From Marsupella aquatica (taxonomy: Eukaryota > Plantae > Marchantiophyta): a stretch of DNA of 64,000 nt. Each line of letters starts with the position of its first letter. Within the stretch, counting starts at the first letter, position 1. Made by a program: the position numbers and the translations under genes. Below, piece by piece: positions 9,934 through 32,335 of this stretch. The stretch is taken from contig OZ316898.1 in the NCBI GenBank assembly GCA_973895155.1, forward strand, positions 4,030,480 to 4,094,479. The letters are read 5' to 3'. Below the pieces are notes generated by a model. The model saw only the letters and a list, made by a program, of their open reading frames with translations, had not been told where the DNA came from and ran no database searches.

Positions 9934-12804
9934 AAGTGCAGCAACTCGGAATCCGAACTCTTCTCACTCGCCGAATCGCGCTTCAATCATCATCCGATGA
10001 AGATTACATTCTCATCGCTCTGGAGCAAACGATCCAGACAGCAGCACCCTAAACCCTGACCCCATCAACCGATCCATCCTGAGCGCTTGCAAGCGACAGT
10101 CGAAAAGCTAAGTTTCCAGAATTCCTGTGAGCGGCTCCAGCCCGAGATTGAAGAAAATGGTCTGAGCGAGACGGAGATTCTCAGCTCGTCGTGCTGGTGC
10201 TGTCTTGTGACTACGAGACAGCCATAGTTCTCATGGCGGGAGATGTTTGCCTTTTTCGATTGCGTCGTGGCCAGAATTTCGTTTGCGCAGACGGAGAGGC
10301 CCACGAGGTTTGATCCAGATTTTAACGAGGCACACAAAACACTAAACTGTTTTCCCACGGCAAATATTTGGTTGGGCCTCTAAATTTGCTGCGCATCTAT
10401 ATATATTTTTGGTTACGCACATATCTAACAAACTCTGGGAAAAATGGAGATTGAGATAAGGTGAGTTTCCTACATGGCATAGCTAGCATGTGAAGAGTTA
10501 CTCAACAACCAGTTGAAGAGTTACTCAACAACCAGTTGAATCTAAATTGATGAATGGATAACAGGTTTAGATGGCCCTGCTGCTGGCTGGAAAGTGAGCC
10601 CACAAATGCATATTTGGCAGTGCCTTGTGGGGTACCCACCAATGGTAGACTCCATGCTGGTGCCCACCATCAATCATGTCACTCAAAACAGGCTATTGCA
10701 AAAATGAAATCATTTCCAGATAACTCCCATGTCCTACACACAAATCTCAACAAGAAGGTCCTTAATGTAAATTGCATTATGGATACCATTCAACCTAATC
10801 AAAAGTCTACTTTCAAATGCTACATTTAGAGTGAAGCATCTAGATTAATTAGTAGTTTTTCCTCTTTATTTACACCCTTTTCTAGTGCCTAAAACGCCTT
10901 GAATAGGAGCCTGGCTAGCTACTTTTTCCTCTTTGTTTTCTTACATACTGACCTGGATACTGGAGCTTCGCTCAGGTTCACTGTTGCCTTCCTCACCTGA
11001 AGTCTCACCCTTAAATTGCCACCACCTCAGAGTTATGGTCTCTAGCCTTCCTCACCTCATGCCTCTCCTGAAACTTGTCACCGCCTCAAAGTCATGGACT
11101 AGAAACGTAGCTGTAGACCATAGGCTCCACAATGTAACTGTGATTAACCTCTTCTACTAACCAAGTCCTTCGTTGAGAGCCTGGTTTTTCTCTTTTTCTC
11201 TTTTTTTTTTTTTGGTGGGTGGGTGGGGGGGGATGATACTCCCATGGAGCTAGTCTGGGTCCCATCATGACACCTTTGCATTTTTTTCTCATTACCACCA
11301 ATCTTGGTTCCAACAATTTTTTGATAGCACCTTCAAAATCTCCCTTAATATGCAAGAAGTGGCTGATCTTGCACTTGTTAGAAGCCTCTCAGAAATATAT
11401 TTCCAACAAGATTACTATCTCTAGTTTTCATATAGAATTGATAAAGTCATGAATGTCTAAAGATTACTCGATCTATCACTCAGTATGCAGATTCTGTGTT
11501 GCCAAAAGTTTCTGGGCAGCTACCTTTGATGTCCTACCAATGGAATCTATATATGTTGGGTTTATTAGAAAGTGCTTTCCAGTGAGCCTTACAGTATAGT
11601 CTAATTTCATTAACAATTGAGAACCTGCAAATAGTCAAAGATCACTGTCTCCTTTTCTTGCCACACTTCAATCATGGCTATGCACTATATGAGCAAAAAA
11701 GAGGTTTTCACTGTCCTGGATGCAGAATTTGTCTGAGCATTTTGGCAGGTCCATCTTGGCTTCAATTTCTTTTCTGTTTTGGCTCAACTTTAATACACTA
11801 TTGTGATGGGGGGCCAATAATGACCCCAGAATTGTTGACCACTTTATTCAGCCTATCCATAAAGGTTATCAAGTCTTTGAGAACCTTCATAAGCAAAAAA
11901 ATCCAATCTACAAATTTATCCTTAATAACTGCTTTTACGAGGCATGCCTTTTGCCAAGATTTTTATTAAAGTTAACCAAAGGAAACAATAGAGCATGATT
12001 GAATGGTTTTCTGAAAAGCAAAAACTTTCAGAGAAATCTTTTTCCAATGAAACAGTAGATACTAATAAAGTTTTTCAAAAACAAGTACCAAATATGCATC
12101 AGTCCAGAATTCAGGGGTTTATTGTGGAAACCTTGTTGTCACAAAGCACATGATTGATAATGTATCAATGATACAGTAATACAACCTCTACGGTACACCA
12201 TTCGCTGCACTGTTCAGCTTTTTGTGACCCCCTAACTTTGGTATCGAAGAGATGTTACTAGTATTGTAGCTAGGACAAAACTTTAATTTTATAATCGTGC
12301 ATTCCAGACCCCCCAGACCTGGGTTATTGTCTACATTCTATACAATTACCTCCTCTATGCACACCATTCTAAGGTACTACAGTACCTACCTCCTCTAAGA
12401 TACACCACCACATGGTACTGTTCAGCTTGTGCTGACCAGATACCTTACTTAAATGGCCTGGTTTATTCACCACTCTGTTCTACAACTGAATACACTGTCC
12501 TGTGAGCATTGTTCGCCATTTTTTTGCATTCCATACACCACGTCCTGATTTATTCACCACTCTGTTCTACAACTGAATACACTGTCCTGTGAGCATTGTT
12601 CGCCATTTTTTGCATTCCATACACCATGTCCTGATGGACAAGCTTCGCTGTAGCTTTCTTCATTCCTTTCACTGACTGCTACACAGACTCCTCCTGTGTG
12701 AGGAGTCCAGATCCCACTCGAGTCGTCGTCGTGCATGGCCGCCTGCTTCGTTTTAACATTATGTTTCCCTCGAGCTGCGAGATATTTACACCCTCGTCTA
12801 CAAC

Positions 12805-14584
12805 TCAATACTTTCTCCTTTGAGCCTTCTTCGCCGCGTATTGCATTCCATACACCATATCCAGACGGACCCGCTTCGCCGCAGCTGTCTTAATTCCTTT
12901 CACTGGCTGCCTCACACGATCCTCCTGTGTGAGGAGCGCAGATTCCACTGAGTCGTCGTCGTCTATTTGCATGGCTGCCTGCTTCGTTTCCACATTACAT
13001 TTCCCTCGAGCTTCTAGTCCTGTGTGCGGTCGGACATGTCGGACCCCACTACAGCGGCTGAAACTGCAACAAACGATAGTTTTGAGTCCACATCTGGTGC
13101 ATGAGCTCGATTTCCCGCGTTGTCACTGCTTGTGATGCAACTGCTTTGAGACGAGTTCAACAACAGATATATTGCACCTCCAAGAGATATGTTAGGCAAC
13201 AGATTGGCTGCCAGAACATTTGTAGCTCCGCAGGCGCACTTCGCCTTTGAAATGATCTGATTTCGGATACACTTGTCACAGTAACTCTTGAAGCAACACT
13301 TGCTCGCGAAGACAGCATCTTTCAAGACTTCCTTGCATAGTGGACATTGGAGCTTGGCTGGGATGTCATTGATTTGTCGAGCTGACGATGGAAAAAAGTC
13401 GACCCCGCTTTCGAAAGCTGATTCATTCGGTTTCATCACTGCGACTTCCCCGGTAGACAAAAAGTACGTTCCCTCGGGGTCGATATCGAGCATGGTTTCA
13501 GGAATGCCAGTGGGTAGCCTGATTTTCTTCTTGTAGTAAGCTTGATCACCATTTGTGGGACAATACTGTATGAAGTGTCGCACAAGTCCACAACGATGAC
13601 ACACGTAACCAGCGTGAGAGATTTTCTTTTCTATACTAGATTTCTTCCCAGGCGGGTTCTCTTAGGTGCGGCACCTTCTGCAGGTCGTTGCCGTTCGATA
13701 GTATCAGCCTCCACGAGGGCCTTCATCTTATCGTCTTCATTTTCCTGGCAAGACTTAAAAGGCGCAGAGGCGGCATACATATCTGCACCACGTTTCTTTT
13801 CTAATCCTTGCCGGTACTCTCTCTGCAATACTATAGTTCTTTCCAGGAGGGCCGTCAGAGCTGCGTTACTTTCTGCACGTCTTCGTTGCCGTTCGATAGT
13901 ATCAGCCTCCACGAGGGCCTTGATATTATCGTCTTCATTTTCTTCATTTTCATGGCAAGACTTAAAAGGCGCAGATTCGGCATACACATCTGCACCACGT
14001 TTCTTTTCTAATCCTTGCCGGTACTCTCTCTGCAATACTATAGTTCTTTCCAGGAGGGCCGTCAGAGCTGCGTTACTTTCTGCACGTCTTCGTTGCCGTT
14101 CGATAGTATCAGCCTCCACGAGGGCCTTGATCTTATCGTCTTCATTTTCTTCATTTTCATGGCCAGACTTAAAAGGCGCAGATGCGGCATACACATCTGA
14201 ACCAAAATCATCGTCGTTGTCCGTGGGCGCCGGGACAACCTTTGTGGCAAAGGCACTGCCCTGATAGAGAGCAGACGCTTGTTTACCCATATTTCCTATT
14301 ACTGCAGCGGAAGGGGCAAGGCTTTTGGCGGCAATTACGAAACTCGGCCTCGGAATTGGCCGAACCAACACCGAAGCGTTTCTCGGCACAAAGGACGCGT
14401 CATCGGTATACTCTTCCTTGGTTTTGGCGTCCAAGATTACCACGCCGAAAAAGTCCATAGGGCTTTCTGTCAATTTCTTCTGTGCGATAATCAAATCTTT
14501 CAAATTCGCAACAGATACCATAGTTCCGTCAATCGAGACAGACTCAAAGGCCTCTCCACTGGTAAACCTGAAATGGACAGCCAT
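12805..14584 (-). pseudogene. RBBP6/Mpe1-like gene copy 1, disrupted by an internal triplication, a premature stop with frameshift at about 13631, and a second frameshift at about 13015
   Basis: The DWNN domain (MAVHFRFTS...VPRNASVLVRPIP) is intact. The zinc knuckle (CHRCGLVRHFIQYCP) and RING (CPLCKEVLKDAV...CC) lie in a different frame after TAG. Compared directly with the intact copy at 30070-31491. Confidence 0.85.
13686..14200. repeat. Coding tandem repeat (198/207-bp units, about 2.5-3 copies) in RBBP6-like copy 1
   Basis: cgttgccgttcgatagtatcagcctccacgagggcc at 13686, 13884 and 14091; encodes repeated KALVEADTIERQR. Confidence 0.92.
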
Positions 14585-15871
14585 TTCGAGCTGTAAATTC
14601 ACAACAAAAGCTCTTTCCTTCACTTTTACAGTGTACAATTGACAATCTGATCGATTGCCTTCCTATTACTCACACTCTCCTGAGTCTCCACTTCAGCAGT
14701 ACCCAAACTATGACCGCACGCTCCAACGTCGTCGTTCACACTCGCAATTCCAACCTCTTCTCCAAACAACTCCGCCCTCCAACCTCGTCGTTCACACTCG
14801 CAATTGTTCAACTCTTCTCCAAACAACTGGCCGCTCGTCGTTCACACTCCCAACAAGAAGTTCTCTTCTCCACCCCAGCTTCAGAGAACTCTCAAAACCC
14901 CACCGCGCTAATGAACAGAACTCCTCCCCTCCAAACAACTGCGACAGAGAACCCTCCGGCACACTTAAAAACTAGCAGAACTCCTCCTCCAAACACCCGC
15001 AGCAGAAAGCAGAACTCCTCCTCTCCAAAAACCCGCAGCAGGAAGCTCTCCGACGACGCAACAGGAATGAGCAAAAGACCTGCTACTGATGGGAGCGAGG
15101 AAGCTTATATATAGGACGAGAGTGATGGGACGAGAGTAATGGGACGAGAGTGATGGGACGATCGCTAGTCATGCGAGCGAGGAGCGACGGATGGGGGGCA
15201 ATCGCAGGAAGAACGGAATTTCAGTACGCGGCCAAACACCGAGGAACGGAAGGAACACAGGAAAGTGCAACCTTAGCAGTCGCGGACACTGGTGCGACGT
15301 CGAAGCATCATTCTACACCAAAAAAAAGGAAGGAAAGATGGAAATGTAGCACCTTCCCCTATAACTTTGATTGGCCCCTGTAGGGAAACAAACCCGAGGC
15401 GAGCGCCCTTCGTTTCAAAGGGCCTTGGTGGGCCCCCATTCCCTCAAACCCCCACACATGCCCTGCCACCTGGCCCCTCGAACCCGGACCCGAGGTACTG
15501 TACGACGCAAGCAAAGTATTGCTCAAAGGAATGTATTGTTAGTCAGTCACTAGTAGTGTATCTTAATGTGGTTGGAGTTTTGCTGTATTGTTAGTGAGAT
15601 TTTTTCGGACTTCCCCTTAAACCGCCACTGTCCGTATAAATACGCTACTGCCAAGAGCCGGTCAGCTCATTCTTCCAGACCTGCCCAGCCAAGGCTCTAC
15701 ACTACGTCCCTGCCAGAACCCGTTAGTCCCAGCCAGGCTCCGCAATAGTAGCTGGGTCAGTGGTCCAAATAGTGCTTTGGGACTTCTCCGAGTCTTTCTG
15801 TTCGCGTGAATGCCGAAGCCATGGTTCGTGAGTGTGGTGGGCTAGAAAACATGCTGCCATAGCCATGGAGA

Positions 15872-15981
15872 TTCGTGAGTGTGCTGGGCTTGAAATAGCA
15901 CAGGAGAACGACATTGAGGCTCGTGAGTGTGCTGGGCCTGAAATAACACAGGAGAACGACATTGAGGCTCGTGAGTGTGCA
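15872..15981. repeat. About 48-bp tandem repeat near the left end of the Kolobok-like element
   Basis: tcgtgagtgtgctgggc.tgaaata.cacaggagaacgacattgaggc repeated; reads RECAG.EI.QENDIEA in ORF 15832-16038. Confidence 0.8.
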
Positions 15982-16469
15982 TACTCTCTTCATGTTCAAA
16001 GAACTTTATGGCCTCAGTATGCAGCGGAAACGAAGTAACTTTCGTTCTCCCCTGATTAGATCGTCTGCTCTTGGGCTGATTTCATTTCTGCGTCCCCTCA
16101 ATCAAATACTTACCTCGTCCTCTTGATATTGCAGCAATGTATATATAACTGTGAGCGGGGGCAGTTACCTAGCCCAGGAGAGGGGGAGGGATGGGACATT
16201 GTCCATCGCTTGTTCAAATTGTCCCAGAACAGAGCTCGATCGCAGAGGTGTTTATAGCCATATAGCCAGCAATTGTTACTGTTATGTTCAGGTTTACACT
16301 TGTTATGACATCGACCACAAATTTGTCCAGCAAATTACATTCTCAATAGCACGAAGGCAAAAAGGTTACATTGTTTTTTTGTCTCCCTGCTCTGCTGCGA
16401 TCGAGCATGTGTACAGATACCTGGAAAAGCGAACTCAAGTCTCCCCGTTTTGATTCACAGTAATAAATA

Positions 16470-17070
16470 TATGAACAAGAGCAAAATGTTATGCCAATAG
16501 CAGTATAATCGGAAGATGAAGGATGAACTCTACCTGTGGAGTGTTGCCTAAAGCTCTCCACAATTATCCAAACTCGAGCGACCAAAAATGAGCTCTCCTA
16601 AACTCAGTTCTGTCCAATTCTCTTCCTCCATGTCGAACGCAATCAAAAACATAGGGGAAGTGCAGGCCGTCATATACAGAGCGACATTGAAATAAACAGC
16701 TTTACTAAGACCCAGGTGTCTCCAAGAACAAGACCCATTTGTCTCCAAAAACACAACACGGAATCGAAGATTTGCACCCAGAACTGATTTGCACCCAGAA
16801 CATGGCACTCGTCATGATCGTCGCGAGAACAAACCGGGCCCAAGATCTCCCAAGTCTTGGCCCTCTCGCGAACCAGTTTTTGGAACTCTCCGGCACCCGG
16901 TGTCTCCTTGCGCCCACCTTCACAAAATTCCGTAGGAGAGAATCTGGCCAACCAGCTTTTGATAACATCTTAGCCTTGAAAATTGAAGGGAAAGGCATCA
17001 TCGCTATAACGATTTCTACGATATGCTCGGGTAGCTGTCTCATAGACTGTCCACCCTCCATCTCCTCCAC
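16470..17070 (-). pseudogene. Degenerate F-box protein gene fragment
   Basis: QLPEHIVEIVIAMMPFPSIFKAKMLSKAGW is an F-box motif. After frameshifts comes a propeller-like piece (KAVYFNVALYMTA...LIAFDMEEENWTEL). Confidence 0.7.
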
Positions 17071-18709
17071 AATGCATAGACAAACGGCTCAATGCAACTG
17101 CAGCCCCCGTCGTCGATCCAATGTTTCTGTCACAATTGAGTGAAACCTTAAATTACTCCACAAGAGTTGGCGGTATTGGCAATCAAAATGATTGAGGTAG
17201 GATGATATATGGGAGAGAACTTACTTCCGACAAAGATGACCTCCGGAGGTGCACGACATGGGATTTGTGGGATCTCTGCTCCGTAGTACATTCGTCATCC
17301 CGCATCGCTCGTCACTGGATCACAAGGCACCAACGCAAGATGCTCACACCTCGATCCGGAGATCTCTCCCCAAAATTGACATGAGAAGAAAAAAACACTT
17401 TCATGAGGGGAAAAAAGTTGCAGTCAATAATTTCTCGCTTTACTTCGGAGAAAGAGAGAGACGAAGGTTGGGAGAGACACTGTTCACTAGTTTGTTCTCT
17501 TGTACAGATAGCGCGCAATTGTAAAAATCAAGTGCCATGAACTTGCACAATCAATCAATCTATGCACCATTGCTACCGCCCGCCATCGCCAAAGCTTACT
17601 AGTCACTTGGATAGTGAACATCCATCTAATCGCCACCTGAGAATGTGAATGCTAGAACCCAATGCTTGGACCTCCTTCTAGGGCTCCATGCGCTTCTGTA
17701 TCTTTCGAGACATAAATGGCAAAAGGCAACAAGCAAAGCACAATTACAACGATTTTATGGCTTGGTCTAATATAAGCTGTGATTGCACAGGCGAGCTGTC
17801 ACACTCTCCAGTCTCTACTGCCAGATTGCACTTGATTTACGTATCTGCTAAGCAGAAGATATGACAGCTTAGGAGGGCTGCGACATTGTCCTTCATTAAT
17901 TTTGAACATTCATCTCAAACCACATGATGTTAGTGAGCACAATAGCCGGCTGAATCTTTGATTCATACTCAACATCCTACCTCTGCACATCCTACCTCTG
18001 CGATAGGGGAAAACAATCGGCTTCACTGAACCAAACATTCGTAACCTTCTCTATCCATCTTGTTACCATTTCCACAATGTTTGTGAAGATCGCGATTTGG
18101 AGATGCTTCTCCTTCCTTGGCCATGCACTTCAACTTAGTCGTAGATGAGCAGGGAAGTCCCAAGTGCAATGATCATTTTACACATAATGACTCGGTAGGG
18201 TCAACATGGTTTACACTAAACGGGAGTCGGCTAGGTCTATCGTGCATTTCTAGGTTTACACATAACGTACAGGGTCGGGGCGAGATGGCACGGTTTACAC
18301 AGTAGTGGCAAGATATGTCGTTGATGTCACAACTGAGAACGATGATGGGCATGGAAAGGAAAGTAGCCTCGACTCTTCCTAGAAGGTGATAGTCTCACAA
18401 AAGTGTCTTTAGAACACTAGTGTGGGTGAAATGCAGACTTGGTGAGGGAGACCGACCACTTTTTGTTGGTGACTTTCCGTCTGGCAAGGCAATTGTTTTG
18501 GGACTTGCCATATAGCAAGGCACTCACTTGGGTCAAATACAAGGCATTTGCATTTGTTGCAAGGGAAGGTATGAACCTACTAACTAAACTCTTGCATCTT
18601 TTTCCATAAGTGCATTCTTGTGAGCATGGTACTAGACAAATAATATAAGGACTTCTAATTTGCAAAATGTTGTTGTTGTCTTGTTTTGCTTGCCAGAGTA
18701 GCAGGAGAA

Positions 18710-21700
18710 ATGGTCCGTCAACCACATAGGATTGATTATCACCGAGTTGGGGGCAATGTTGCACTCAGGCTTCCTGGAAGTCATATACGTACATACCATG
18801 ACTTACAAGGTGCCCTCAAAATGTCCCATGGGAAGGTGGTGGCTTGGCTGATGGATGGTATGTCCATGCAAATCTCTGCTGCTATTAGCGCTCATCATAG
18901 ACAGGATGAAGAGGAAGTAACAGCACTTGAGGGTCCTAATGATTTTGGATGGATAAATAATGAACACCTTGCTAATGAAGAGGACTTGAGAACATTTGGG
19001 ATCATTGCCAAGGTACTTTCCATATCATTTTCCATTATACTTTCAAGATTGCTTTCTTTCACTAATCCTTGTTTTTCTAGGTTTTCATTCAAGTAAACCT
19101 CTTCTAGCATCTTTTAAAAAAGAAAAAGAAAATTGGGGTTTTCCGAAATGTAGAGGTCTTGTCTTTGGTACATCCTGATTTAGTATTGTTGTTGACACAT
19201 GTTTTTATTTTTTTCTTGCAGCCATCTTGTGGTGCATTGTTATCCGTTTCAAACGGTGATGAGTCCATTCCTAATGAGGCATCACCTTCAGACGAAGAGG
19301 AAGATGATTCAGACTTGGACACTGGTGTATTTGACCACATGGAGTCTGGAGAGGAGGATGCAGACCACATTCGAGATTCCAACATAGACGTGGAAAATGG
19401 TTCTATGATGTCCAACTCCCAGGTAACTTTGTTTAGGGTTTCTAATCCTTTTGCTGTGTGTTACATTTGTTCCATAAATTGACAAGTCATGCAAATGATG
19501 AACTTTACTTTACATAAACAAAATGCATTCATTTTATGTAAACCTTAGTACCTTCAACTAGCAAACAATAATGCAACCTAAACTCTTAACAGATGTCAAA
19601 TGAGGATGGCGGGGAGGATGGAGCCATTCCTTTGTTGGATGTGGCTGATCCAACTACATTTGGATTAGACAATATGGTTTTCATGGATTCTGGATTTGAA
19701 GAGAAACACACTCAGGTATTGTATTTTTTCACAATGTTGCCCTTCACTTTCATATATTGGCATCAATTCATAGTTTTAATTATATGTTTTCTATTTATTG
19801 CATCTTTACATAGTTTACTGATTATTGTGTGCTTTTCTAGGCATCTACTTCTTCAGATCAAGTACAAGTTGACTCTTGTTTGGATTTTGAGTATGAGCCA
19901 TCGTCTCAAGAAAATATAAACGAGTCAGACCCTGAGAGTGTAGTGGAGTATGCTTTTTGGCAAAAAAGCAAGGTCCACGAATTTTTCCAGGAATTTTGTG
20001 TGGATTGTCGTGTTGAAGGTTGCGTTGGTAAGTATTTGGTTGAGGACATTGTGACCCATCATCAGTTGTGGATATTGAAGTTGAAGTGCCCAACAGGGCA
20101 TACACAATCTTTCATGACTGGAGAGAATGAACTTCATAGAGGTATGTAAACTGCTGACATTTACACTATTTTTTAACTTTTGCAAATATTGGATTGATTT
20201 AATATTGTGTGTTATCTTTTAATATTTTTTATAAGATCTTGTTTTCTCTTGATGATTTACAGGCGTACCCGCAATTACTGGACTAATTTACCATTCCGCT
20301 CTCTCTGCTGGTCTAACACACAACATCATATGTGAACTATTCTCTCACATTCAAATCCATGTTCCAAGAAACACTCGTTGGTTTCGATTTCAAAATGGAG
20401 CCCGAAGAGACATTGGATGGATTGCAGCAGTACTGCAAGTCTGGAATGATAAGAAACAAAGGTTGCAACGAAGCCTAGCCGAAAGAGATGGTATGTCACT
20501 CTTCTTTGTAGTGAAGCATTTGCTAGTTAGCAAGATTAATTCATGAATTTATGAAATTACTACATACTAGGTTGTTAGAGCATGCACATACATGTTAGTT
20601 TCTAAATATTATTTTGTGGATTTATGATAATTGTAGGTTCCACTCCAATGATTTTATATGTGGATTGTCGTTGGGACTCATCACGTTCTGGATATCATGG
20701 CACTGTTCCTGTGATAGACGTGGTAACTAGTAAGGTAGTGGAGCTTGTAACCATTGACCGAGTTGAGGCTGGGAATTCAGGCACTATTGAAGAAATTGGT
20801 GTTCGTCGTGCTCTACAACATCTTCAGGATGTTGGAGTTACAATTAGTGAGGTTGTTCACGATGATAACAACACAGTTGATGCTATTCTTCGTGAGCTCA
20901 ATGTTGATAACCAAAAGGATCTATGGCACAAATGTAAGAATCTTTTGAAGCAGTTTAACAAAGAGCTAGCAAATGTGAAAGAAACAGCACCTGCTGGTGG
21001 GATTGATGCTGCAATATCCTTGCAAGAATTGGGCAGATTCACTGTTCAAGTGTTGTCCAGTTGGTGCAAGAACCAAAATTTGAGGCATACAGGCAATAAG
21101 ACAGAGTTGGTGCACCGCATAGGAAGACATAGAGGGCTTCCAGAGGAGGACATCACATTGCGCACCAGGAGGCAATTGAAGTATCCAGAACTGACAGAGA
21201 AACAACTTGGTGATAAGTTGAAGAGTTAGTTCTACTATTGTTGCTGCAATGCGAAAGAAAGGTATGATGGCAACTATGATATTTAATTTCATTGAAATTA
21301 GCTTGAGCAATGAATTTGTTCATCATTTTAACTAAGCTAACTCTTAAATTATATTGTAATGACTACTTACTAGCAGGGGAAATGATGATGCTACCATGTT
21401 GGCTAGGGAGATCATCACAGCAGCTGATCATTGGGCTGGCAACCATGAACCTTGCAAAAGCTTTCTTCCTCGCAAGTGTTGTGAGGAAGGTGCAACTTAT
21501 ATGCCATACTATGCGACAGGTAAAGTGTATTAATTATTAAATTTGGTTATGTACTTATGAGATAAATAAGGTGTTTGGATTGTTACCTAATCTGTTGGGA
21601 TTTCTAATATTTGCAAGTATATGGAATCTTGTGGATTTTTCAGGGGGTGCTACTCATAGAGCTTTGAAGCAATGGTTGCAGAAGAACGTCATTGCAATCA

Positions 21701-22005
21701 ATGTTCGCTTCTATACTAGAGCCCGAGCAAACTTTTTCAGTGAAACATTTCATGGAAACATCAACAAATATGCTATGAAGAGGATTCATTTTTCCATGAC
21801 TCATGAGGCCCGCATGGCATGTGCTGCAATATGCTGGAATGAAAACATTGGTCGAGAGGTGGTACGAGTTCGAACACGGCAACCTAGTAATACATGTACC
21901 CGTCAGCGTACATCAAGGGTTCGTGACCTTGTTCCTAGAAGCATCAGGTGGAAGAAAGACGTGGGCTGTACCATATTTGGAAGAGGTGTAGACTATGATA
22001 TGTGA
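18710..22005 (+). pseudogene. Kolobok-type DDE transposase, 8 exons (18710-19012, 19222-19422, 19593-19715, 19841-20141, 20263-20490, 20637-21261, 21377-21519, 21644-22005), about 760 aa, one in-frame TAG at 21227-21229
   Basis: Motifs YVDCRWDSSRSGYHGT, NSGTIEEIGVRRAL, VVHDD, KDLWHKCKN, DHWAGNHEPC, SETFHGNINKYAMKRIHFS...ARMACAAICWNEN. All junctions are GT-AG and phase-compatible. Confidence 0.8.
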
Positions 22006-22846
22006 TACTTGGTTAGTACATTTATTTTGGCACGAAACTTCCACCCTTGTCGTGCATTTGACATTTAGGATATATGTAAGTTGTAGGTTTTACTATATTC
22101 ATTTGTCATGTTTTCAGTCCCATATATCACCTTGCCATTTACTTTTGTTTTTGTAATGGAATATATATTTGTAGGATGTGAAAGTTATATTAGGGCGCGC
22201 TTAGCACCCTCAATGACAGTTGTGAGTATGTCGCTGTATATCAACTTTGGAAATACATCAACTTTGGAAATTCATCAACTTTGAATTTTTTTTCATAATT
22301 TCAGAATACTCCAAAGGGGAATTGAACCCCTCGTGCTGCCATCCAGTAGGAGTTCCAACCCAAAGGAGGGGGAAGGAGGCACAAGCCAAACAAACACAAA
22401 AAAACAACTATCACAAATAACCCAGACAATGAAAATACTAGGAATAAACAAATATAGATACATTGAAATCAAAAACTTTCAAAAACCAAATTACCAGGAT
22501 GGTGTTTGCTTCGCATTTCCCAAGGATTTTGCAATGCAATTGGGAGAAAGAAGGAGGCACATGCCAAACAAAGAAAATAAAATAATATAGTAGAACAAAG
22601 AAACCCTGGAAGAATAAGTAAACATAGATGAAAACATAGTTACACAGCCTAAGAGCACTAGAGGCATACACCAACATCGTGTTTGCTTAGAAACTCCCAA
22701 GTTATTTATACTTGCGGTTGGGAAAGGAAAGGAGGCACATGTGAAACAAACATGACAAAACCGGTGAAAACAAAGAACCCATGAAAACATAACTCAAGTG
22801 AGGACACAACAATGATGAAAAAAGAAAAAAAACACAACTTAGAAAC

Positions 22847-23250
22847 CTAGAATCGGAAACCCACATGTTGTTCGCCTGGTAGTTCCCACGTGGACTGCAC
22901 CACAGCTGTGACTGCTGCTGGGAAGGGTGTTCTGTCTGCAAAGCTAGCAACATATGCTAGCTTGCGATACACAATATACCGTTGTCGGCGAGGAACTGTT
23001 TCAGTGTATGCCCATGCGGCACACATATGAAAAGCTTCAGCTGTCGCAGGGGAAAGAACCTGGGCAAAGTTGAGGTCCTGAAGGTTGTCGTCTATCGCCG
23101 TGCAAAAAGTTGGGAACCTAGCAACTATGTCAGCATGTCTCAACAATCGAAATTTTTTGACGTCCCGGTGGAGGAATAGGCCATGATAAATGATATATGT
23201 GATCTCTATAGGAGATCAGCTCCGCCGGTCTGTTTTGATGCTCAACGCTC
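22847..23250 (-). CDS. KolX-like accessory protein (P2X7 C-terminal ballast-like), last exon; 5' part uncertain
   Basis: The C-terminus RRQRYIVYRKLAY...RTPFPAAVTAVVQSTWELPGEQHVGFRF fits the RY.AYR...R.PLP.CV...I...FP...Y.GF pattern. It is convergent with the transposase. Confidence 0.65.
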
Positions 23251-23488
23251 CTACAAAACATAGGAAATATTGAACAAATGGAGTTAGCATCCCTACAAAA
23301 CTAAGCCAACAATTGTTGTTTGATGGAGGTTATATTTTACACCAAATTGAGGAAGAACAAACAAGTATTATGCATGCATGAAGGAAAGTCAATTGAAAAA
23401 AAATTCACATATTTTGCTAAGGTAGGCAAACTAAGTATATGCATGCAAACTTGCCACACAGAAGTGCACACATGACCAAAAAGAAAAT

Positions 23489-23727
23489 TAAGGGTAAGTA
23501 CCAAGTATCACTCATGCATAATTGAAGGTATTTGGTCAACAAGAAAATGAAGGGTAAGTACCAAGCAAGTTTCACTCATGCATAATTGAAGGTATTCGGT
23601 AAATTAACAAGAAAATGAAGGGTAAGTACCAAGTTTCAATCTTGCATAATTGAAGGTATTCGGTCAACAAGAAAATGAAGGGTAAGTACCAAGTTTCACT
23701 CATGCATAATTGAAGGTATTCGGTCAA
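23489..23727. repeat. About 60-bp tandem repeat, 4 copies, inside the Kolobok-like element
   Basis: aagggtaagtaccaagtttcactcatgcataattgaaggtattcggtcaacaagaaaatg repeated. Confidence 0.9.
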
Positions 23728-24199
23728 GAGAGAGTTCAAATTGTAGACCCTGCATGATTGAATGTACCTGGAATTATTCATGCCGATTGCAAGGGTGATC
23801 GAGAAACCAGTCAATAACTCCTAGGGTAAGTCTATTATGATGTTCCAAGAACAACTGAACTGCACTCGACCGATGGAAGAACGAAACCAACTGCAAGAAC
23901 AAATTTCCTCTGCAAAATATTTTGCGGAGCTAAACTGCAATGTTATGCCAAGCTAAACTACAGAATGGCCGATCGAAGAACAATGAACTGCAAAACGGTT
24001 GATCGAAGGAACACATAAAGTTTTCTAGTTACTCGGCCTTCAGCTCATTCAAACCAAGGAACAGAGAAAAGGAGCTCATGTAGTTGAAGTATGCCCTTCT
24101 TATGGGAGTCATAAACCCAAAAAGTGAGAAGCAGCACAAGCACATAGTTTGGTCGTAAACCAAAAAAGCGATCGAACCAATTATAGAAGTATGTGAGCT

Positions 24200-25839
24200 G
24201 TGAACGAGCACAATAGGCATGGGCAATGGGCATGGGCAAGGACTGTGAGCGTCTGTGGCCACAGTAGCGCTGATTTCATTGAGCTTCATTGGCCTAATGT
24301 AAGCACGTTTCCTGTGGCGGTGGCAATCGTGTTGGGGGCTGCTCTTCTCCTTTTCTTATGGGTGGTCCTGAATTGGGCACTGCGGCAAAGGATTTACTTG
24401 AACTCGAAGGCTAAAATTCCCAGAGGTCCAAGGGTGGCCCCTGATCGGAGAAACGCTGGCTTTTGCGAATGCCAATCCTATAGAGTTTGCCACGCCTCGC
24501 CTGAAGAAGTAAGACCATAGTTGCACATTAACTCTTTACTTCTTCATTCCGACAGGACAATGAATTCACTGAAGGGATTGTGAAGTAGCTCATTCATTTT
24601 TCGCACTATTTCAAGTCAATAGGTTGGCAAATATTTCTCGAGAAATTTGGTTGTGGCTGCCGAACAATACCCGTCCCTTCGCCAGGGGGTGTTACTCCTT
24701 TTCTCCCACCCTGTGATAGTGGGTCTAAAGAGAGTGCGCCTTCCAGCTCTAACACGAAAATCCGATACTCTCAAATAGAAGCAAAGAGAGATTGGAGATC
24801 CAATCCCCCAATGGCCTGTTGCCGTAAGAGCCTAATCCGATACTCTCATTTAGAAGCAAAGAGAGAGATTGGAGATCCAATCCCCCAATGGCCTGTTGCC
24901 GTAAGAGCCTTCACTTTAGAAGTCATTAGTTTAACATAGTCATTCGAATGTCAGTTGGGCTAAGGTGTGACAAATTCTGAAAGTTTTTGCAATTAAATGG
25001 ATTGCAGGTATGCAGCTGTCTTTAGATCCCATATAGCTAGAGTACCCTCGATTGTAGTCACATCTCCGGATATGCCAAAGTTTGTGCATCCTGAAAAGAG
25101 TCTATTCCGAGCAAGCTATCCGCGAAACATTGCAACTCTTATCGGCAAAAAATCTCTTTCCAATTGCGACCCTGCGCGGCACCCCTTTCTGAAGAGAATA
25201 GTACACAGTGCTGTTCTTCCACAAACTCTAAAGCGTGAAGTGGGGCGTTGTGCTAGACACTCTGAAGTCTTGGAATGGAAGAATAGTTCAGATAGCACTA
25301 GAGAGGAAGGAGGTGAGTGCAATCCTGAATTTTCCACACTTAGAATCATGAGCGCAAACTTGAGATCACTGCATTGCTTTTGTTGGCAAGTGAAAGCTGG
25401 AATGGGACTGACCATCAAGAGACATAATGTCTGCCTTGAATGCTTGTCGTAACAGCTACAAAAGCGACGAACATTTCTATTGGCTTTGTCCTACATGTCA
25501 GAACTAGTAAAGGGAGAAAAAGATGTTTCGATTTGTAGTGTGACCATTAGAAAGAATTTCCGCGGTGATTTGAAATCAATCGATGTCGTTGCTGCTGAAT
25601 ATGGCGTCAAAATTCCTTTAGAATAGTAGCACTGGTTGCTGTCTGACAACCCTAGAGTCTGTTGTTCACTCTTACTGTGGCTATCTATTTCATATTTGGG
25701 ATCCCCGATATTCGTGGGTGAGCTGAAGCCCAAATTCTCGTCAATGCTTATCGAGCACTTTCGAAGGCCTTTTACGCCATCCCTATCAATCTCCCGGGCT
25801 TCACTTGGTGTAAAGCGCACTTGGTATAAAGCTTTGCAG
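24200..25839 (+). pseudogene. Cytochrome P450 (CYP85-clan-like) 5' fragment, frameshifted and truncated
   Basis: Membrane anchor, then IPRG / GWPLIGETLAF across a frameshift, an intron, YAAVFRSHI...FRASYPRNIATLIGKKSL, and a later piece resembling PINLPGFT...KALQ. No heme-binding region. Confidence 0.8.
24759..24910. repeat. About 75-bp tandem duplication in the CYP intron
   Basis: aatccgatactctca...tggcctgttgccgtaagagcct twice. Confidence 0.85.
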
Positions 25840-26741
25840 GTATCACGTCTGTCCAGGAAACGAGCTTGCGAAGCTGAATACCTCGCTGCTCTGCTGCTAT
25901 CAACTCAGAAATGAGCTTGCGAAGCTGAATACCTCCCTGCTCTGCTGCAATCGACTCTGCAATGGTTTACACATGCAGCATGGGAGGAGGAAAAGCATCT
26001 GGACACTGGTGCATCATGGGCGAGAGGACTTGCCCACCAAGGCTTCTCAAACTCACGCGGCCCTCCGTAAAACGAGTAGAGACACTGTGGGGCAGGTGTA
26101 GAGCTGACCGGGCCAAAAAGCGACCTGTTAATTCGAAACAATCGGGAATGCCCGGGCCTGAAATAACTCCTATATTAAGCAACCTGGTATAACCAGGTTT
26201 TGACAGTGGACAGTGGCGGTTTAATGGTGCATCACTGTTTATTTCAGTCTCCAAACTCCTATTTGTTTTGGTGATTATTTTAATTTTAATTTGGGTCTCC
26301 CATGGCTGGCTTCCTTGTATTTGTTTTCTATGTGTGAATTACTTGAACCCCAATATATATTCCATTTATTATTTCAATGTAAAAATGGATTGAACCCCTT
26401 TAAGTTTATTTATTTCTGTGCCACCTTTCTCTGCCGTTAATTGGAGGGAAAGAAAAACTGGTACTGATTTGAACTGGTGACCTAAAGGTTCAAACTGGAC
26501 TCCTCTACCACTACACCACATAAATATATTTAACAAATGTTGTACCTTAATTATTTTTAACATAGAAATCATTGTGACATTTCCATGATCAATTACCTTT
26601 TCTCCTCTGGGCCCGCGTCTCCTTGTCCTGGGCATAGAGTTTGAGATTTTTCAATCGGCTTCAATTCACATGCTCTTCATAATTGCAAGTTTTGTGGGTA
26701 TTTTATATTTCCATTCTTTTATGCAAATTTTGTAATTAAAG

Positions 26742-27086
26742 ACGAAAGGCAATCTCGAGGGCAATCAATGCGGATTAGCATTGATTACCCCATAAGTGCT
26801 GCCCGCTACCCGCATGTGCTGTATCTGATTTCAGTTTAAGTACCTGGCGCGAATGTACTTCATCACGAATTGAGGAAGGGCTCAATGGTAGCCCAGATCA
26901 GTTGGGGAGTTGGAGGTCCCGGGTTCAAACCCAGCTGTATGTCAAGAATGCCTTTTAGCATTCACCCCACCCAAAAAGTGGGGATCATTCATGCTAGTAA
27001 AATTTGAAAAAAATGTGAGCGGGGTGGGCAGTAGGCGCGGGCAGGTGTACCTGAGGCTCTTAATGAGCCTCGAGATTGTCTTTCGT
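26742..27086. mobile_element. MITE-like element with 19-bp TIRs containing a tRNA-like Pol III promoter
   Basis: acgaaaggcaatctcgagg / cctcgagattgtctttcgt (1 mismatch). Internal A-box-like ggctcaatgg (about 26879) and B-box ggttcaaacc (about 26922). Confidence 0.6.
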
Positions 27087-27852
27087 GGTGAATATTTTGT
27101 AGGCACATAATGTCATGAACATGGTATTGAATGCTAAGTTAGAGCATTTAGAGCCATCATACAAAGGTTCAAAGCTTCTTGTACTTTCTATGGGAGACCC
27201 CAACGTCCATCCATCTTGACCGGCTCAGGTTCCATCTCATATGTACAGGAGAAAAGAAATATGTGGCTCCATGAGCCATGTCTTCTTAATTCAGTTTCCA
27301 CTTCATCATGAAATGCATCTACACCTTGAATTATTTCTTGCACCATTCTATGCACATCACCCTCAGCATCAGTTGCTAACCCTGAAGAACCCTGAGTGAT
27401 AACTACTTCCTCGTCACATGGGTCTCCCAATAGGTCTAGTACAGTCTACTCGTAAAAGGGGGGAGTGGGGGTTCTCTAGTGTATAGGAGTCCCAAAATTG
27501 GGTATTGCTAACCAGTCTCTTTTTTAAAAATTTGGTGACTTTTGTATTCTTAGTGCATTTTATGAGACTCCAGATGGCTAGTAAGTTAGGGCATTCCCCG
27601 GGACATTCATATTCCTGAAATTGCATTCGGAGAGACCGTAGTCAGCCTGCCTCTCCTCCGTTTTGCACAAGAAATTGTGAGAGCGCATTCAAAGACAAAA
27701 GTCAAGGTGTGAAGCAACCAGCTCTTGGTGTGCATTGACTCCTGAGACCAAAGGCCATCTGCTTGGAAATTCAATTGCCTGAGCTGAGACCACTTGGAGA
27801 CAAGGGCTGGAAACAAAAAATTGAGGAAGAGATTGAGAAGGCAAACTGAAGA

Positions 27853-28085
27853 CTTGGAGGGGGGGGCTCGTCACTACATGGAGGGTCATACATCACATCC
27901 AAATGTTTGGATCATTTATGCCCCCCCTAAGCCACTTTATGACACTGCACGTGTGATTTTGCAATTAAACAACCCTATCTATATATTTCCATTGACAACT
28001 TAATAAGTCTTCCCTCAAAACTATTTAAATGACCCTGTATTTTGTCGCACATGGAAGTGACCACCCCCCCCCCCCCCCCGGCAAG
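27853..28085. mobile_element. MITE of the P-like family
   Basis: Termini cttggagggggggg.tcgtcactacatg / catggaagtgacca(c)n ggcaag. Degenerate 8-bp TSD actgaaga/attgagga. The paralogous site at about 33471 is empty (single attgagga). Confidence 0.8.
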
Positions 28086-30069
28086 ATTGAGGACAGCCAA
28101 CGAGAGTACGACAAAGATATGGAGTTCTGGGAGCAAATCACCATGTGTGGCCCTTTAGCTTTGATGACATATATACTGGAGACAGAGTTGGGTTCTTGTT
28201 GGGCAAATTGGATCAAGACCAGGCAAATGCTCAGACATTGATCATGATAGAAAGGGCATCAGACCATGACATGATCTAGAAGGATTACTTTAAGGAAAAT
28301 CCTACCTTATATGATAGATACAAGATGAGAAGGCCCCTTTTTTGGAGGTCCATGATGGTTTCTGTGAATCTGAAAGGTATTTACCAAAAGTTCATTATTT
28401 TACCAAAATGGTTGTCCAGTCGACTTCTATTCAACAATGTGCGTATTTGTCACAAGAATGAATGTTTACTCTCTCTTTCAGCCATTGTAGCCATAGTCAA
28501 ATCCCTCTAAGCAATACCGGTTATATAAGACTTGTCAATTCACAGGCTGAATCTTCCCCCCTTTGGCCTCTCTACGACTGACTTCTTTTGAAGTGATCTA
28601 TGACTCTACAGGAACTAAAACATAGCAATTCAACCTCACATGCTTAATACAGGCATCCAATTTCACCAAAAGGATGATACTCCTATGGGATTAACTTGTT
28701 AGAAGCCTCTCAGAAATATCTTTCCAACCAGTTTACTATCATTCTCTAGTTTTCATGTAGAATTGTTACAAGTCATGAATGTCTAAATTAAAGATTACTC
28801 TGTCACTCATGCAGTATCCAGATTTTGTGTTGCCAAAAGATTTTGGGCAGCTACCTTTGACATTATATCCTTTGATATCCAATGGAATTTATATTTGAAT
28901 GTAGGGTTTCTTAGAAAATACTTTCAAGTGAGCTTTAATATAGTATAGTCTAATTTCATGAAGAATTGAGAGACCTAAAAATTGTCAAAGATCACTGTCT
29001 CCTTTTCTTGCCACACTTCAGTCGTTGGTGTAATATGCACTACGTGAGCAAAAAAGAGGGTTTCACTGTCCAGGTTGCAAAATTTGACTGAGCATTTTGA
29101 CAGGTCTATCTTGGCTTCAATTTCTTTTCTGTTTTGGCTCAACTTTAATACACTATTGTGATGGGGGGCCAATAATGACCCCAGAATTGTTGACCACTTT
29201 ATTCAACCTATCCATAAAGGTTATCAAGTTTTTGTGAACCTTCATAAGCAAAACAATCCAATATACAAATTTATCCTTAAATAACTGCTTTTACGAGGCA
29301 TGCCTGGTGCCTAGATTTTTATTAAAGTTAACCAAAGGGAAACAATCAAGCATGATTAAACGGTTTTCTAAAAAACTTTTCAGAGAAATCGTTTTCCAAT
29401 GAAGTACAGTACTAGATACTAATAAACTTTTTCAAGTTTTCCAAAAACAAGTACCAAATATGCATCACTCCAGAATTGAGAGGCTTATTGTCGAAACCTT
29501 GTTGTCACAAAGCACATTGATAATGATCAATGGTACATTACAGTAATAGCTCCTCTATGGTACACCATTCGCTGAAATGTTCAGCTTTTTGTCACCCTCT
29601 AACTTTGGTATCGAAGTGATGTTACTAGTAGCTAACCATTTGTACTCCATATTGCTAGACAAAACTTTTAGTCTATAATCCTGCATTCCAGGCCAGCCAG
29701 ACCTGGATTATCGTCTACATTCTATACAACCTACCTCCTCTATGATACACCACCACATGGTACTGTTCAGCTTGTGCTGAACACATACCTTAGTCAAATG
29801 GCCTGGGTTTTCCCACATATTTACACTCTGTTCTACAACTGAATACACTGTCCTTTGAGCACTGTTCGCCATTTTTTGCATTCCATACACCATGTCCTGA
29901 TCGACCCGCTTTGCTGTAGCTTTTTTCATTCCTTTCACTGACTGCTATCAGACTCCTCCTGTGTGAGGAGTCCAGATCCCACTCGAGTCGTCGTCGTGCA
30001 TGGCCGCCTGCTTCGTTTTAACAATATGTTTCCCTCGAGCTGCTAGATATTTACAACCTCTTCTACAAA

Positions 30070-31491
30070 TCAATACACTCTCCTTTGAGCCTTGTTCGCC
30101 GCGTATTGCATTCCATACACCATATCCTGACGGACCCGCTTCGCCCCAGCTGTCTTCATTCCTTTCGCTGGCTGCTGCACACAGTCCTCCTGTGTGAGGA
30201 GCGCAGATTCCACTGAGTCGTCGTCGTCGTCGTCGATTTGCATGGGTGCCTGCTTCGTTTCCACATTACGTTTCCCTCGAGCTCCTAGTCCCTTAGTTCG
30301 GTCGGAAATGTCGGACCCCACTACAGCGGCTGAAACTGCAACCGATGATAGTTTTGAGTCCACATCTGGTGCATGAGCTCGATTTCCCGCGTTGTCACTG
30401 CTTGTGATGCAACTGCTTTGAGACGAGTTCAACAACAGACATATTGCACCTCGAAGAGATATGTTAGGCAACAGATTGTCTGCCAGAACATTTGTAGCTC
30501 CGCAGGCGCACTTCGCCTGTGAAATGATCTGATTCCGGATACACTTGTCACAGTAACTCCTGAAGCAACACTTGCTCGCGAAGACAGCATCCTTCAAGAC
30601 TTCCTTGCACAGTGGACATTGGAGCTCGGCTGGGATGTCATTGATTTGTCGAGCTGACGATGGAAGAAAGTCGACCCCGCTTTCGAAAGCTGATTCGTTC
30701 GGCTTCATCACTGCGACTTCCCCGGTAGGCAAAAAGTACGTTCCCTCGGGGGCGATATCGAGCATGATTTTAGGAATGCCAGTGGGTAGCCTGATTTTCT
30801 TCTTGTCGTAAGCTTGATCACCATTTGTGGGACAATGCTGTATGAAGTGTCCCACAACTCCACAACGATGACACACGTAACCAGCGTGAGGGATTTTCTT
30901 TTCAAATCCTTGCACGTACTCTCTCTGCCATACTAGATTTCTTCCCAGGCAATTATTGCCATAGGCCTTCTGAGGTGCGGCCCGTTCTGCAGGTCGTCGT
31001 TGCCATTCGATAGTATCAGCCTCCACGAGGGCCTTTATCTTTTCGTCTTCGTTTTCTTTATTTTCCTGGCAAGACTTAAAAGGCGCAGAGGGGGCATACA
31101 CATCTGAACCAAAATCATCGTCGTTGTCCGTGGGCGCCGGGACAACCTTTGTGGCAAAGGCACTGCCCTGATAGAGAGCAGGCGCTTGTTTACTCATATT
31201 TCGTAATACTGCAGCGGAAGGGGCAAGGCTTTTGGCGGCAATTACGAAACTCGGCCTTGGAATTCGCCGAACCAACATCGAAGTGTTTCTCGGCACAAAG
31301 GACGCGTCATCGGTATACTCTTCGTTGGTTTTGGCGTCCAAGATTACCACGCCGAAAAAGTCCTTAGGGCTTTTTGTCAATTTCTTCTGTGCGATAATCA
31401 AATCCTTCAAATCCGCAACAGATACCATAGTTCCGTAAATCGACACAGACTCAAAGGCCTTTTCACTGGTAAACCTGAAATGGACAGCCAT
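30070..31491 (-). CDS. RBBP6/Mpe1-like E3 ligase (DWNN ubiquitin-like domain, CCHC knuckle, RING), intronless, about 473 aa
   Basis: MAVHFRFTS..., VPRNTSMLVRRIP, DDFGSDVY, GYVCHRCGVVGHFIQHCPTNGD, PTGIPK, ELQCPLCKEVLKDAVFASKCCFRSYCDKCIR...C.CG...LLPN. Uninterrupted ORF. Confidence 0.88.
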   Translation of the reverse strand: MAVHFRFTSEKAFESVSIYGTMVSVADLKDLIIAQKKLTKSPKDFFGVVILDAKTNEEYTDDASFVPRNTSMLVRRIPRPSFVIAAKSLAPSAAVLRNMSKQAPALYQGSAFATKVVPAPTDNDDDFGSDVYAPSAPFKSCQENKENEDEKIKALVEADTIEWQRRPAERAAPQKAYGNNCLGRNLVWQREYVQGFEKKIPHAGYVCHRCGVVGHFIQHCPTNGDQAYDKKKIRLPTGIPKIMLDIAPEGTYFLPTGEVAVMKPNESAFESGVDFLPSSARQINDIPAELQCPLCKEVLKDAVFASKCCFRSYCDKCIRNQIISQAKCACGATNVLADNLLPNISLRGAICLLLNSSQSSCITSSDNAGNRAHAPDVDSKLSSVAVSAAVVGSDISDRTKGLGARGKRNVETKQAPMQIDDDDDDSVESALLTQEDCVQQPAKGMKTAGAKRVRQDMVYGMQYAANKAQRRVY

Positions 31492-32335
31492 TTCGAGCTG
31501 CAAATTCACAGCAAAAGCTCTTTCCTTCACTGCTACAAACAATGTGTACAATTGACAATCTGATAAATTGCTTTCCTATTCCTCACCCTCTCCTGAGACT
31601 ACACTTCAACAGTACTCAAAATATGACCGCACGCTCCAACGTCGTCGTTCACACTCGCAATTCTTCAACCTCTTCTCCAAACGAACTCCGCCCTCCAACC
31701 TCGTCGTTCACACTCGCAATTGTTCAACCTCGTCTCCAAACAACTGGCCGCTCGTCGTTCACACTCGCAACGAGAAGTTCTCAGCTCCACACGACACTCC
31801 CTGCGTCTGAGAACTCTCAAAACCCCACCGCGCTAATGAACAGAACTCCTCCTCTCCAGACAACTGCGACAGAAAACTCTCCGGCACACTTCGCGAACGA
31901 GCAGAACTCCTCCTCCAAACAACCGCAGCAGAAAGCAGAGCTCCTCCTCTCCAAACAACCGCAGCAGAAAGCTCTCCGACGACGCAACAGTAATGAGGAA
32001 AAGACCTGCCCCTGACGGAAGCGAGGAAGCTTATATAGGACGAGAGTGATGGGACGGTCGCTAGTCATGGGAGCGAGGAAGCTGATTTATATAGGACGAG
32101 AGCGAGGAGAGACGGATGGGGACGAATCGCAGGAAGAACGGAATCGGCCAAACACCGAGGAACGGAAGGAACAGAGGAAAGTGCAACCTTCGCAGTCGCG
32201 GACATTGGTGCGACCTCGGAGCATCACATTCTACACCCAAAAAAGGAAGGAAAGAAGGAACACTGGTGCGACGTCGAAGCATCATTCTACACCCACAAAA
32301 AGGAAGGAAAGATGGAAATGCAGCAACGTCCCCGG

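Follow-up and report, generated by a model that had tools for sequence, protein, structure and literature searches.

What is the 10.6-kb block of DNA that one copy of a duplicated stretch in the liverwort Marsupella aquatica holds and the other copy lacks? The block lies at 15617-26224 of a 64,000-nucleotide stretch of contig OZ316898.1 (assembly GCA_973895155.1), the whole of which we refer to as the window. A first-pass annotation had described it as a TTAA-flanked, Kolobok-like transposon that carries fragments of host genes. We find that the block is a real inserted cut-and-paste DNA transposon with true termini at TTAA. It probably belongs to the Kolobok superfamily, within a streptophyte lineage that occurs in charophyte algae and in liverworts.

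Ends of the element

The features that delimit the element, together with its tandem repeats, are the following (coordinates are those of the window).

15617-15620: left TTAA, a target-site duplication or target half-site, abutting the terminus directly
15621-15633, + strand: left terminal inverted repeat (TIR) ACCGCCACTGTCC, 13 bp, perfect
15634-15640: subterminal GTATAAA motif, right after the left TIR
15873-15980: left subterminal tandem repeat, 48-bp unit, 2.2 copies
23477-23727: internal tandem repeat, 60-bp unit, 4.1 copies
25857-25964: right subterminal tandem repeat, 51-bp unit, 2.1 copies
26208-26220, − strand: right TIR, GGACAGTGGCGGT as read on the + strand, pairing with the left TIR
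26221-26224: right TTAA, abutting the right TIR

The whole element thus spans 15617-26224, its left end reading cccc TTAA ACCGCCACTGTCC and its right end GGACAGTGGCGGT TTAA, with 5′-AC..GT-3′ termini. All 226 TTAA sites of the window were scanned for inverted pairs of 8 to 13 bp at a spacing of 1-25 kb, and the 15617/26224 pair was the only one. When the window was simulated with a first-order Markov model, a 13-mer pair was obtained in none of 300 simulations and an 11-mer pair in two of 300. The TTAA sites and the perfect 13-bp TIR reported earlier are therefore present in the sequence as a unique pair. The earlier annotation had also allowed that the two ends might be independent copies of a small dispersed repeat. 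Similarity between the left and right ends is confined to TTAA and the 13 bp (17 bases), and no second copy of any part of the element was found elsewhere in the window, which argues that the ends are not two such copies.

The element was compared with related loci in Riccia sorocarpa (L001, L003 and L004, all from GCA_046195345.1, and L006), Calypogeia fissa (L002) and the charophyte Chara braunii (L005). Riccia family 1 is represented by a full element in L001 (9240-16045), with the transposase on the + strand and a small convergent gene at 15036-15521, by L003, which is 98% identical to L001 across the shared parts, and by L004 (9752-12668), a complete 2.9-kb internal-deletion derivative with TTAA at both sides. 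L006 (6876-15584, 8.7 kb) holds a complete element of a second Riccia family, likewise with TTAA at both sides. L001 and L006 repeat the arrangement of the window element, the transposase being on the + strand and the small gene facing it on the − strand. The ends available for comparison read as follows.

Window, both ends: TTAA ACCGCCACTGTCC
L001, one end: TTAA ACCGCGGGTACC
L003, one end: TTAA ACCGCGGGTAGG
L004, both ends: TTAA ACCGCGGGTAAG and TTAA ACCGCGGGTTTC
L006, both ends: TTAA ACCACCACTAAC and TTAA ACCACCACTACA
Calypogeia L002, one end: TTAA ACCACCAGTACG

All nine ends (two each from the window, L004 and L006, one each from L001, L003 and L002) have the same order of flank, TTAA and ACC(G/A)C. 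DNA outside TTAA is unrelated at every end; the four bases of TTAA are constant at 9/9 ends, while the next flanking base varies. Since the same TTAA and ACC(G/A)C recur next to unrelated flanks, the termini are genuine and insertion is targeted to TTAA, which is probably duplicated in the process. Inverted repeats of the window element and of its relatives are only 10-13 bp long. Most ends also carry GTA(T/C)AAA at ~13-22 nt from the tip, in three liverwort genera (window, L001, L002, L003, L004 and L006), which makes this motif a candidate transposase-binding site. It had also been proposed that other transposase copies might prove to have different and closer ends; the Riccia and Calypogeia copies share the same ends. 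In L005 the surroundings of the Chara braunii gene yielded no ends flanked by TTAA, and in L002 no left end was found for the Calypogeia element. Copies of Riccia family 1 sit on three chromosomes and are 94-98% identical to each other. Together with a deletion derivative that keeps intact TTAA-flanked ends, this identity suggests recent mobility of the family in Riccia sorocarpa.

The duplicated stretch gives a second view of the same block. Copy A (11373-15598) aligns with copy B (28694-32835) at 84-94% identity, and further to the right 27483-28206 aligns with 32985-33587. The surplus of copy A over copy B is ~11.9 kb (15599-27482), of which the TIR-bounded element makes up 10.6 kb; the 1.26 kb to the right of the element (26225-27482) is likewise missing from copy B, and the junction between A and B falls in a variable 88-bp minisatellite. 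The block is inserted or copy-A-specific DNA. Its absence from the paralogue, as first described, holds true, but to say that the paralogous copy joins directly goes too far, given a surplus of ~11.9 kb, a junction within a minisatellite and no clean TTAA site.

Transposase and accessory gene

The transposase was queried exon by exon, the exons being defined by homology, mainly to the Calypogeia fissa genomic copy L002. The coding features of the element are listed below; ORF stands for open reading frame.

18710-22005, + strand: transposase gene, multi-exon; its single exons share 40-70% identity with the copy in Calypogeia fissa and with proteins from Riccia and from metagenomes
~18710-19000, + strand: transposase exon, beginning with Met (MVRQPH...)
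19901-20146, + strand: transposase exon, Cys/His-rich
20256-20510, + strand: transposase exon, homology-defined
20627-21262, + strand: catalytic exon, with the first D (VDCRWDS), the second D (VVHDDNN), DxxH (KDLWHK) and an inserted SAP domain
21227-21229, + strand: premature stop TAG (TGG to TAG) at a Trp conserved in relatives, LKS*FYYCC in the window versus LKSWFYKCC in Calypogeia
21366-21519, + strand: transposase exon with zinc-finger motif H-x5-H-x2-C...C, between DxxH and the catalytic E
~21640-22005, + strand: last transposase exon, in which the catalytic E lies within NFFSETFHG; coding to ~22002, then the stop codon
22847-23215, − strand: convergent accessory ORF, conserved part 22856-23056; the ORF in its full length showed no start codon

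The spliced DDE transposase announced by the first-pass annotation is borne out: a multi-exon gene on the + strand contains the D, D, DxxH and E motifs. An acidic stretch lies between exon 1 and 19901, outside the homology-defined exons. Motifs follow each other in the order D, D, DxxH, SAP, H..H..C..C zinc finger and E. The SAP domain, a DNA-binding type of domain, corresponds to residues 142-172 of ORF 20606-21226 (Pfam E = 5e-5) and stands between DxxH and the zinc finger, while the putative zinc-binding motif HWAGNHEPC..RKCC is located at ~21417-21480, ahead of the E exon. In an alignment of 13 family proteins D316, D382 and H404 are invariant, and H542 and C550 nearly so. The Trp lost at 21227-21229 is also nearly invariant across the family alignment, and the TAG at this position would cut the transposase off ahead of the zinc finger and the catalytic E. 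Judged by its reading frame, the window copy is thus a disabled, decaying, non-autonomous relic. The nonsense codon was absent from the earlier description. The Calypogeia copy L002 has a stop codon of its own at 9950-9952, where it takes the place of the Arg in the catalytic motif VDC-R-WDS, so that the annotated protein P0001 begins downstream of it and spans the C-terminal half only.

A phmmer search with the 207-residue catalytic ORF (20606-21226) returned 213 matches, the proteins at the top being unnamed or hypothetical. The best of them come from the liverworts Calypogeia fissa (60% identity), Riccia sorocarpa and R. fluitans, from the charophytes Chara braunii and Closterium, and from a Pyramimonas/Prorocentrum transcript cluster. 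UniProt names the Riccia relatives P0005 and P0013 just 'SAP domain-containing protein'. A profile search with an alignment of 24 members yielded three close relatives only, as low-complexity words swamped the candidates.

The convergent ORF ends in ...RTPFPAAVTAVVQSTWELPGEQHVGFRF, and over the final 70 residues it shares 44% identity with the Riccia protein P0157 (E = 3e-10). The gene is kept at the same position in four elements (window, L001, L003 and L006), with the C-terminal pattern R-x-R..VYR..(8-10)..R-T-P-[FL]-P..(11)..W..(6)..VGF. We treat it as a conserved accessory gene of this lineage and possibly a relative of KolX, the second protein of Kolobok elements. The C-terminus parallels the KolX/P2X7 end (Figure S6 of PMC9587614) by eye and over a short motif only. 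In the same paper, KolX of the Kol0 lineage is described as having the P2X7 cytoplasmic-ballast fold with seven conserved cysteines; the accessory protein contains no cysteines, hence none of these seven. A profile built from three accessory sequences had no match among PDB sequences, a set that should include P2X7, and two word-based searches for homologues of the accessory protein as KolX gave nothing. The top Atlas match is DUF8286 at 0.88, which we treat as a lead only. The AlphaFold model of the protein (pLDDT 42.5) is too poor for a fold search. Of what had been claimed for the small convergent gene, its presence is confirmed and its conservation in relatives can be added, while homology to KolX finds no statistical support.

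Superfamily assignment and rival classes

Kolobok was defined by TTAA duplications and 5′-RR..YY-3′ termini (Kojima and Bao 2022, PMC9587614), and nearly all Kolobok elements, but not MuDR, P or hAT, are reported to have a zinc finger between C/DxxH and the catalytic E (PMC9587614). In Data S5 of that paper, Kolobok_16_CGi reads DARHGWRK, HTHDRNMAI, QNDLWHGIK, DHYQNDHKRCH..RCK and FVESFNN, and it shares 'DARHG.RK..HD.N..NDLWH..H..H..C..C..ESFNN' with Kolobok_1_OwFu. The same data contain Kol0 families with 'DGQFDSPG', Kolobok_1_XT with GDGQFDSPGHSAKYCTYT and FDVWHICK, and also Kolobok_24_Hma and Kolobok_1_LHu (DGTWQRRGFSSLNGV). The consensus of the streptophyte family is DGRYDSxRxAxHCTV, HDD, QKDxWHKxK and HWAGDHSxC. 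In the window element, TTAA is present at both ends, the D, D, DxxH and E motifs are in place, and the zinc finger occupies the position typical of Kolobok.

The predicted fold agrees with such a placement. An AlphaFold model of the full-length relative P0013 has a mean pLDDT of 72.5, with a core above 90, and the first matches in a fold search with this model were the Drosophila P element transposase, Hermes (hAT) and ISCth4 (IS256 family), at a probability of at least 0.92. No piggyBac, PIF or mariner structures were among the fold matches listed for P0013. The modelled RNase H-like fold groups with P element, hAT and IS256, that is, with the C/DxxH group that includes Kolobok. We conclude that Kolobok is the best class for the element because of TTAA, the short inverted repeats, the position of the zinc finger and the wording of the motifs.

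Several observations weigh against this assignment. The termini are AC..GT at 9/9 ends in place of RR..YY, as the first-pass annotation had already noted for the window. The agreement of the motifs, in order and in wording, with the core alignment of Kolobok (Data S5, PMC9587614) was judged by eye only. The accessory ORF has no P2RX7_C or P2X7 match in Pfam (with E allowed up to 10), in a PDB profile search or in the Atlas. A single-TTAA empty site was not found in the paralogue, where the reconstructed empty site aligns only up to 15598 and then runs into divergent minisatellite, and none was found for L004 or L006 among the fetched loci. TTAA is a palindrome and could formally belong to the inverted repeat. 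Finally, where Pfam recognises a transposase, it does so under other names: PF20700 ('Mutator-like transposase') is matched by 8 of 24 relatives and PF10551 ('MULE') by 5 of 24. The PF20700 matches exceed the 26.5-bit cut-off in P0061 (Chara, 30.0 bits) and P0083, the other six relatives falling below it, and among the five relatives that match PF10551 only P0144 (3e-11) is above the cut-off. P0144, a distant phmmer match of 517 residues, combines a THAP domain (E = 6e-25) with this MULE-domain match, which indicates that the Pfam MULE/Mutator models reach into this transposase group. The exons of the window element matched no Pfam transposase family. We take the Kolobok_24_Hma-type sequence DGTWQRRGFSSLNGV to resemble members of PF20700, in which case the Pfam name may not map onto Repbase MuDR. 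TTAA, motif order and zinc finger support the plant Kolobok lineage proposed at first, whereas the rule for termini and the Pfam names speak otherwise.

The same Pfam matches, and the presence of the IS256-family ISCth4 transposase among the top fold matches, would suit the main rival, a divergent Mutator-like (MuDR/MULE) element that uses TTAA. MULEs produce target-site duplications of 8-11 bp. In contrast, TTAA is found next to each of the nine ends here, and the flanks of the window element, L004 and L006 contain no direct repeat of more than these four bases. The inverted repeats of just 10-13 bp also count against a Mutator-like origin, as does the zinc finger between DxxH and E, which MuDR lacks (PMC9587614). 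On this evidence we regard the Mutator-like alternative as unlikely.

Membership of the piggyBac superfamily is far less probable still. It would account for TTAA at both ends and for an accessory protein devoid of the KolX cysteines, which in this respect is like the piggyBac-borne KolX-like proteins of PMC9587614. However, the Pfam model DDE_Tnp_1_7 matches neither the window exons nor any of the 24 relatives, which showed no match to PIF/Harbinger, hAT, P or CACTA models either. The transposase has the DxxH motif and the catalytic E, and the fold matches listed are P, hAT and IS256 transposases. Termini of piggyBac elements are CCC..GGG, while those of the element described here are ACC..GGT.

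We consider it just as improbable that the block is a PIF/Harbinger element, with a 3-bp TTA/TAA duplication and a transposase accompanied by a second gene. All four bases of TTAA are constant at every one of the nine ends and the neighbouring flank base varies, although a one-base offset would make TTAA readable as a TTA duplication. The two-gene layout is as expected of this superfamily, but the second gene has no Myb/SANT match, and no match to DDE_Tnp_4 was obtained in Pfam. The least credible alternative, a chance inverted match around a degraded transposase gene in unique DNA, could appeal to the shortness of the inverted repeat (13 bp) and to the lack of a clean empty site in the paralogue, but such a pair never arose in the 300 simulations, and it is refuted by ACC(G/A)C beside TTAA, which bounds related elements in two other liverwort genera.

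Cargo, surroundings and relation to known systems

Two 3-kb arms flank the genes of the Kolobok-type element. The arms have a G+C content of ~0.45, compared with 0.39-0.40 in the two genes, and nothing in the related elements corresponds to them at the DNA or protein level. A host-gene-like piece lies in the right arm and possibly another in the left.

16708-17088, − strand: F-box-like ORF fragment, left arm (PF00646 E = 0.02, 15.3 bits against a 20.5-bit cut-off)
24197-25449, + strand: P450-like fragment, right arm, composed of an anchor-like N-terminal ORF (24197-24517) and ORF 24997-25449

ORF 24997-25449 resembles residues 48-107 of CYP90B1 (E = 0.005) and has no match to the Pfam p450 model; the F-box-like ORF has no PDB match. 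The P450-like fragment is not conserved among the related elements, and no parent gene of either piece was found within the window or the fetched loci. Elements of Riccia family 1 have a P450 fragment between the transposase and the small gene (L001 13950-14195; L003 11251-12016). It is recognised as PF00067 in called genes and represents another part of another P450 than the fragment in the window. Of the cargo reported in the first-pass annotation, the P450 piece is therefore partly upheld, by the CYP90B1 resemblance, and the F-box piece falls below the cut-off. The parallel drawn there with capture by Pack-MULEs (MULEs that pick up gene fragments) gains from the clear and different P450 fragment in Riccia, while in this copy there is a single P450 match of modest strength and a single weak F-box match. 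Acquisition of host fragments by the lineage is plausible and may be recurrent; for the window copy it is modestly supported by the sequence matches. The P450-like, and possibly the F-box-like, pieces of the arms would be most simply explained as acquired host DNA.

The element is located ~1 kb upstream of a gene encoding a DWNN-domain protein (13631-14638, − strand, Pfam E = 9e-20), which lies within the duplicated unit. Apart from this position, the window copy has no obvious effect. The tandem duplication itself is ~4.2 kb long (11373-15598 / 28694-32835), and internal repeats of 200 bp and 88 bp differ in number between its copies. To the right of the element, 26225-27482 holds a ~350-bp unit with a 20-bp inverted repeat at its borders (~26740-27085), which may be a separate small insertion. 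This unit includes a tRNA-like stretch (~26888-26935), for which ARAGORN makes no call.

These data are compatible with the following course of events. A DDE transposase with an RNase H-like fold, probably using the D of VDCRWDS, the D of HDD and the E of SETFH for catalysis, would recognise the short ends 5′-ACC(G/A)C... and probably the subterminal GTAYAAA, excise the element and reinsert it at TTAA, duplicating the TTAA. The convergent gene would supply a small protein with a KolX-like C-terminus. The window copy probably entered its site ~1 kb upstream of the DWNN-domain gene after the tandem duplication of the gene block, and with its TGG changed to TAG it should be movable now only if another copy provides transposase. 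Its two 3-kb arms would represent lineage-specific DNA of higher G+C content with acquired pieces of host genes.

Kolobok hosts have been listed as animals, fungi, chlorophytes, rhodophytes and protists, and the accompanying alignment contains a family named Kolobok_1_KlNi (PMC9587614). In a survey of 1007 plant genomes Kolobok is named only in the methods. Our search of full-text literature, which had incomplete coverage and did not extend to Repbase, returned no description of Kolobok in liverworts, Marchantia, embryophytes or moss. The name Kolobok_1_KlNi presumably refers to Klebsormidium. The TIR transposons usually attributed to land plants are limited to hAT, CACTA, PIF/Harbinger, Mutator and Tc1/mariner.

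On balance, we favour the view that the window element belongs to a Kolobok lineage, the first to be described from land plants, that has persisted in streptophytes, in Chara and Closterium as well as in three or more liverwort genera, has been recently mobile in liverworts and picks up host fragments. Its own hallmarks would be AC..GT termini with a subterminal GTAYAAA, the SAP insertion and a cysteine-free KolX-like partner. Kolobok-type chemistry and layout are known, whereas the host range, the AC..GT termini, the SAP insertion and the cysteine-free partner would be new. Because annotation of land plants generally assumes five TIR superfamilies, standard pipelines would miss or mislabel a Kolobok-type family of liverworts; at present the Riccia and Calypogeia proteins carry no annotation beyond 'hypothetical' or 'SAP domain-containing'. 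The range of Kolobok would be extended into embryophytes, with a streptophyte clade that can be used to root Kolobok evolution and a plant version of the KolX-like partner in which the role of that protein can be studied. Riccia, with its near-identical copies, might be a source of an active TTAA-specific transposase, and Marchantia provides genetic tools in this plant lineage.

The cargo is reminiscent of Pack-MULEs and of cargo-carrying CACTA/MULE elements, in which host-gene-like fragments lie between transposon ends. As in Pack-MULEs, the fragments differ from member to member: the window element has a clan-85-like P450 N-terminus, and Riccia family 1 a Pfam-recognised P450. Unlike in Pack-MULEs, they ride on an element that retains both transposon genes instead of a short non-autonomous one, and are known from sequence alone. 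Another parallel is offered by those piggyBac families whose second gene is KolX-like (Data S6, PMC9587614), which share the TTAA target and a KolX-like C-terminus without most of the cysteines; however, the transposase in the window is unrelated to piggyBac by Pfam and fold, and the termini differ. The accessory protein is similar to Kolobok KolX in its C-terminal pattern R-x2-[LF]-P ... W/F-P ... GF and differs from it in lacking the seven KolX cysteines and any homology detectable with hidden Markov models.

The closest known system is Kolobok itself (Repbase; Kapitonov and Jurka 2007; PMC9587614), with Kolobok-16_CGi, Kolobok-1_OwFu, Kolobok-1_MyEd and the two-gene Kol0 (Kolobok-1_XT) as the nearest families. 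Common features are TTAA at both ends, short inverted repeats, the order D-D-DxxH-zinc finger-E and closely similar local motifs. The lineage in the window differs by AC..GT termini, those of Kolobok being RR..YY, by a SAP domain inserted between DxxH and the zinc finger, and, in the window element, by arms that carry gene fragments. Its hosts are liverworts and charophytes, whereas the plants listed in PMC9587614 are chlorophytes and rhodophytes.

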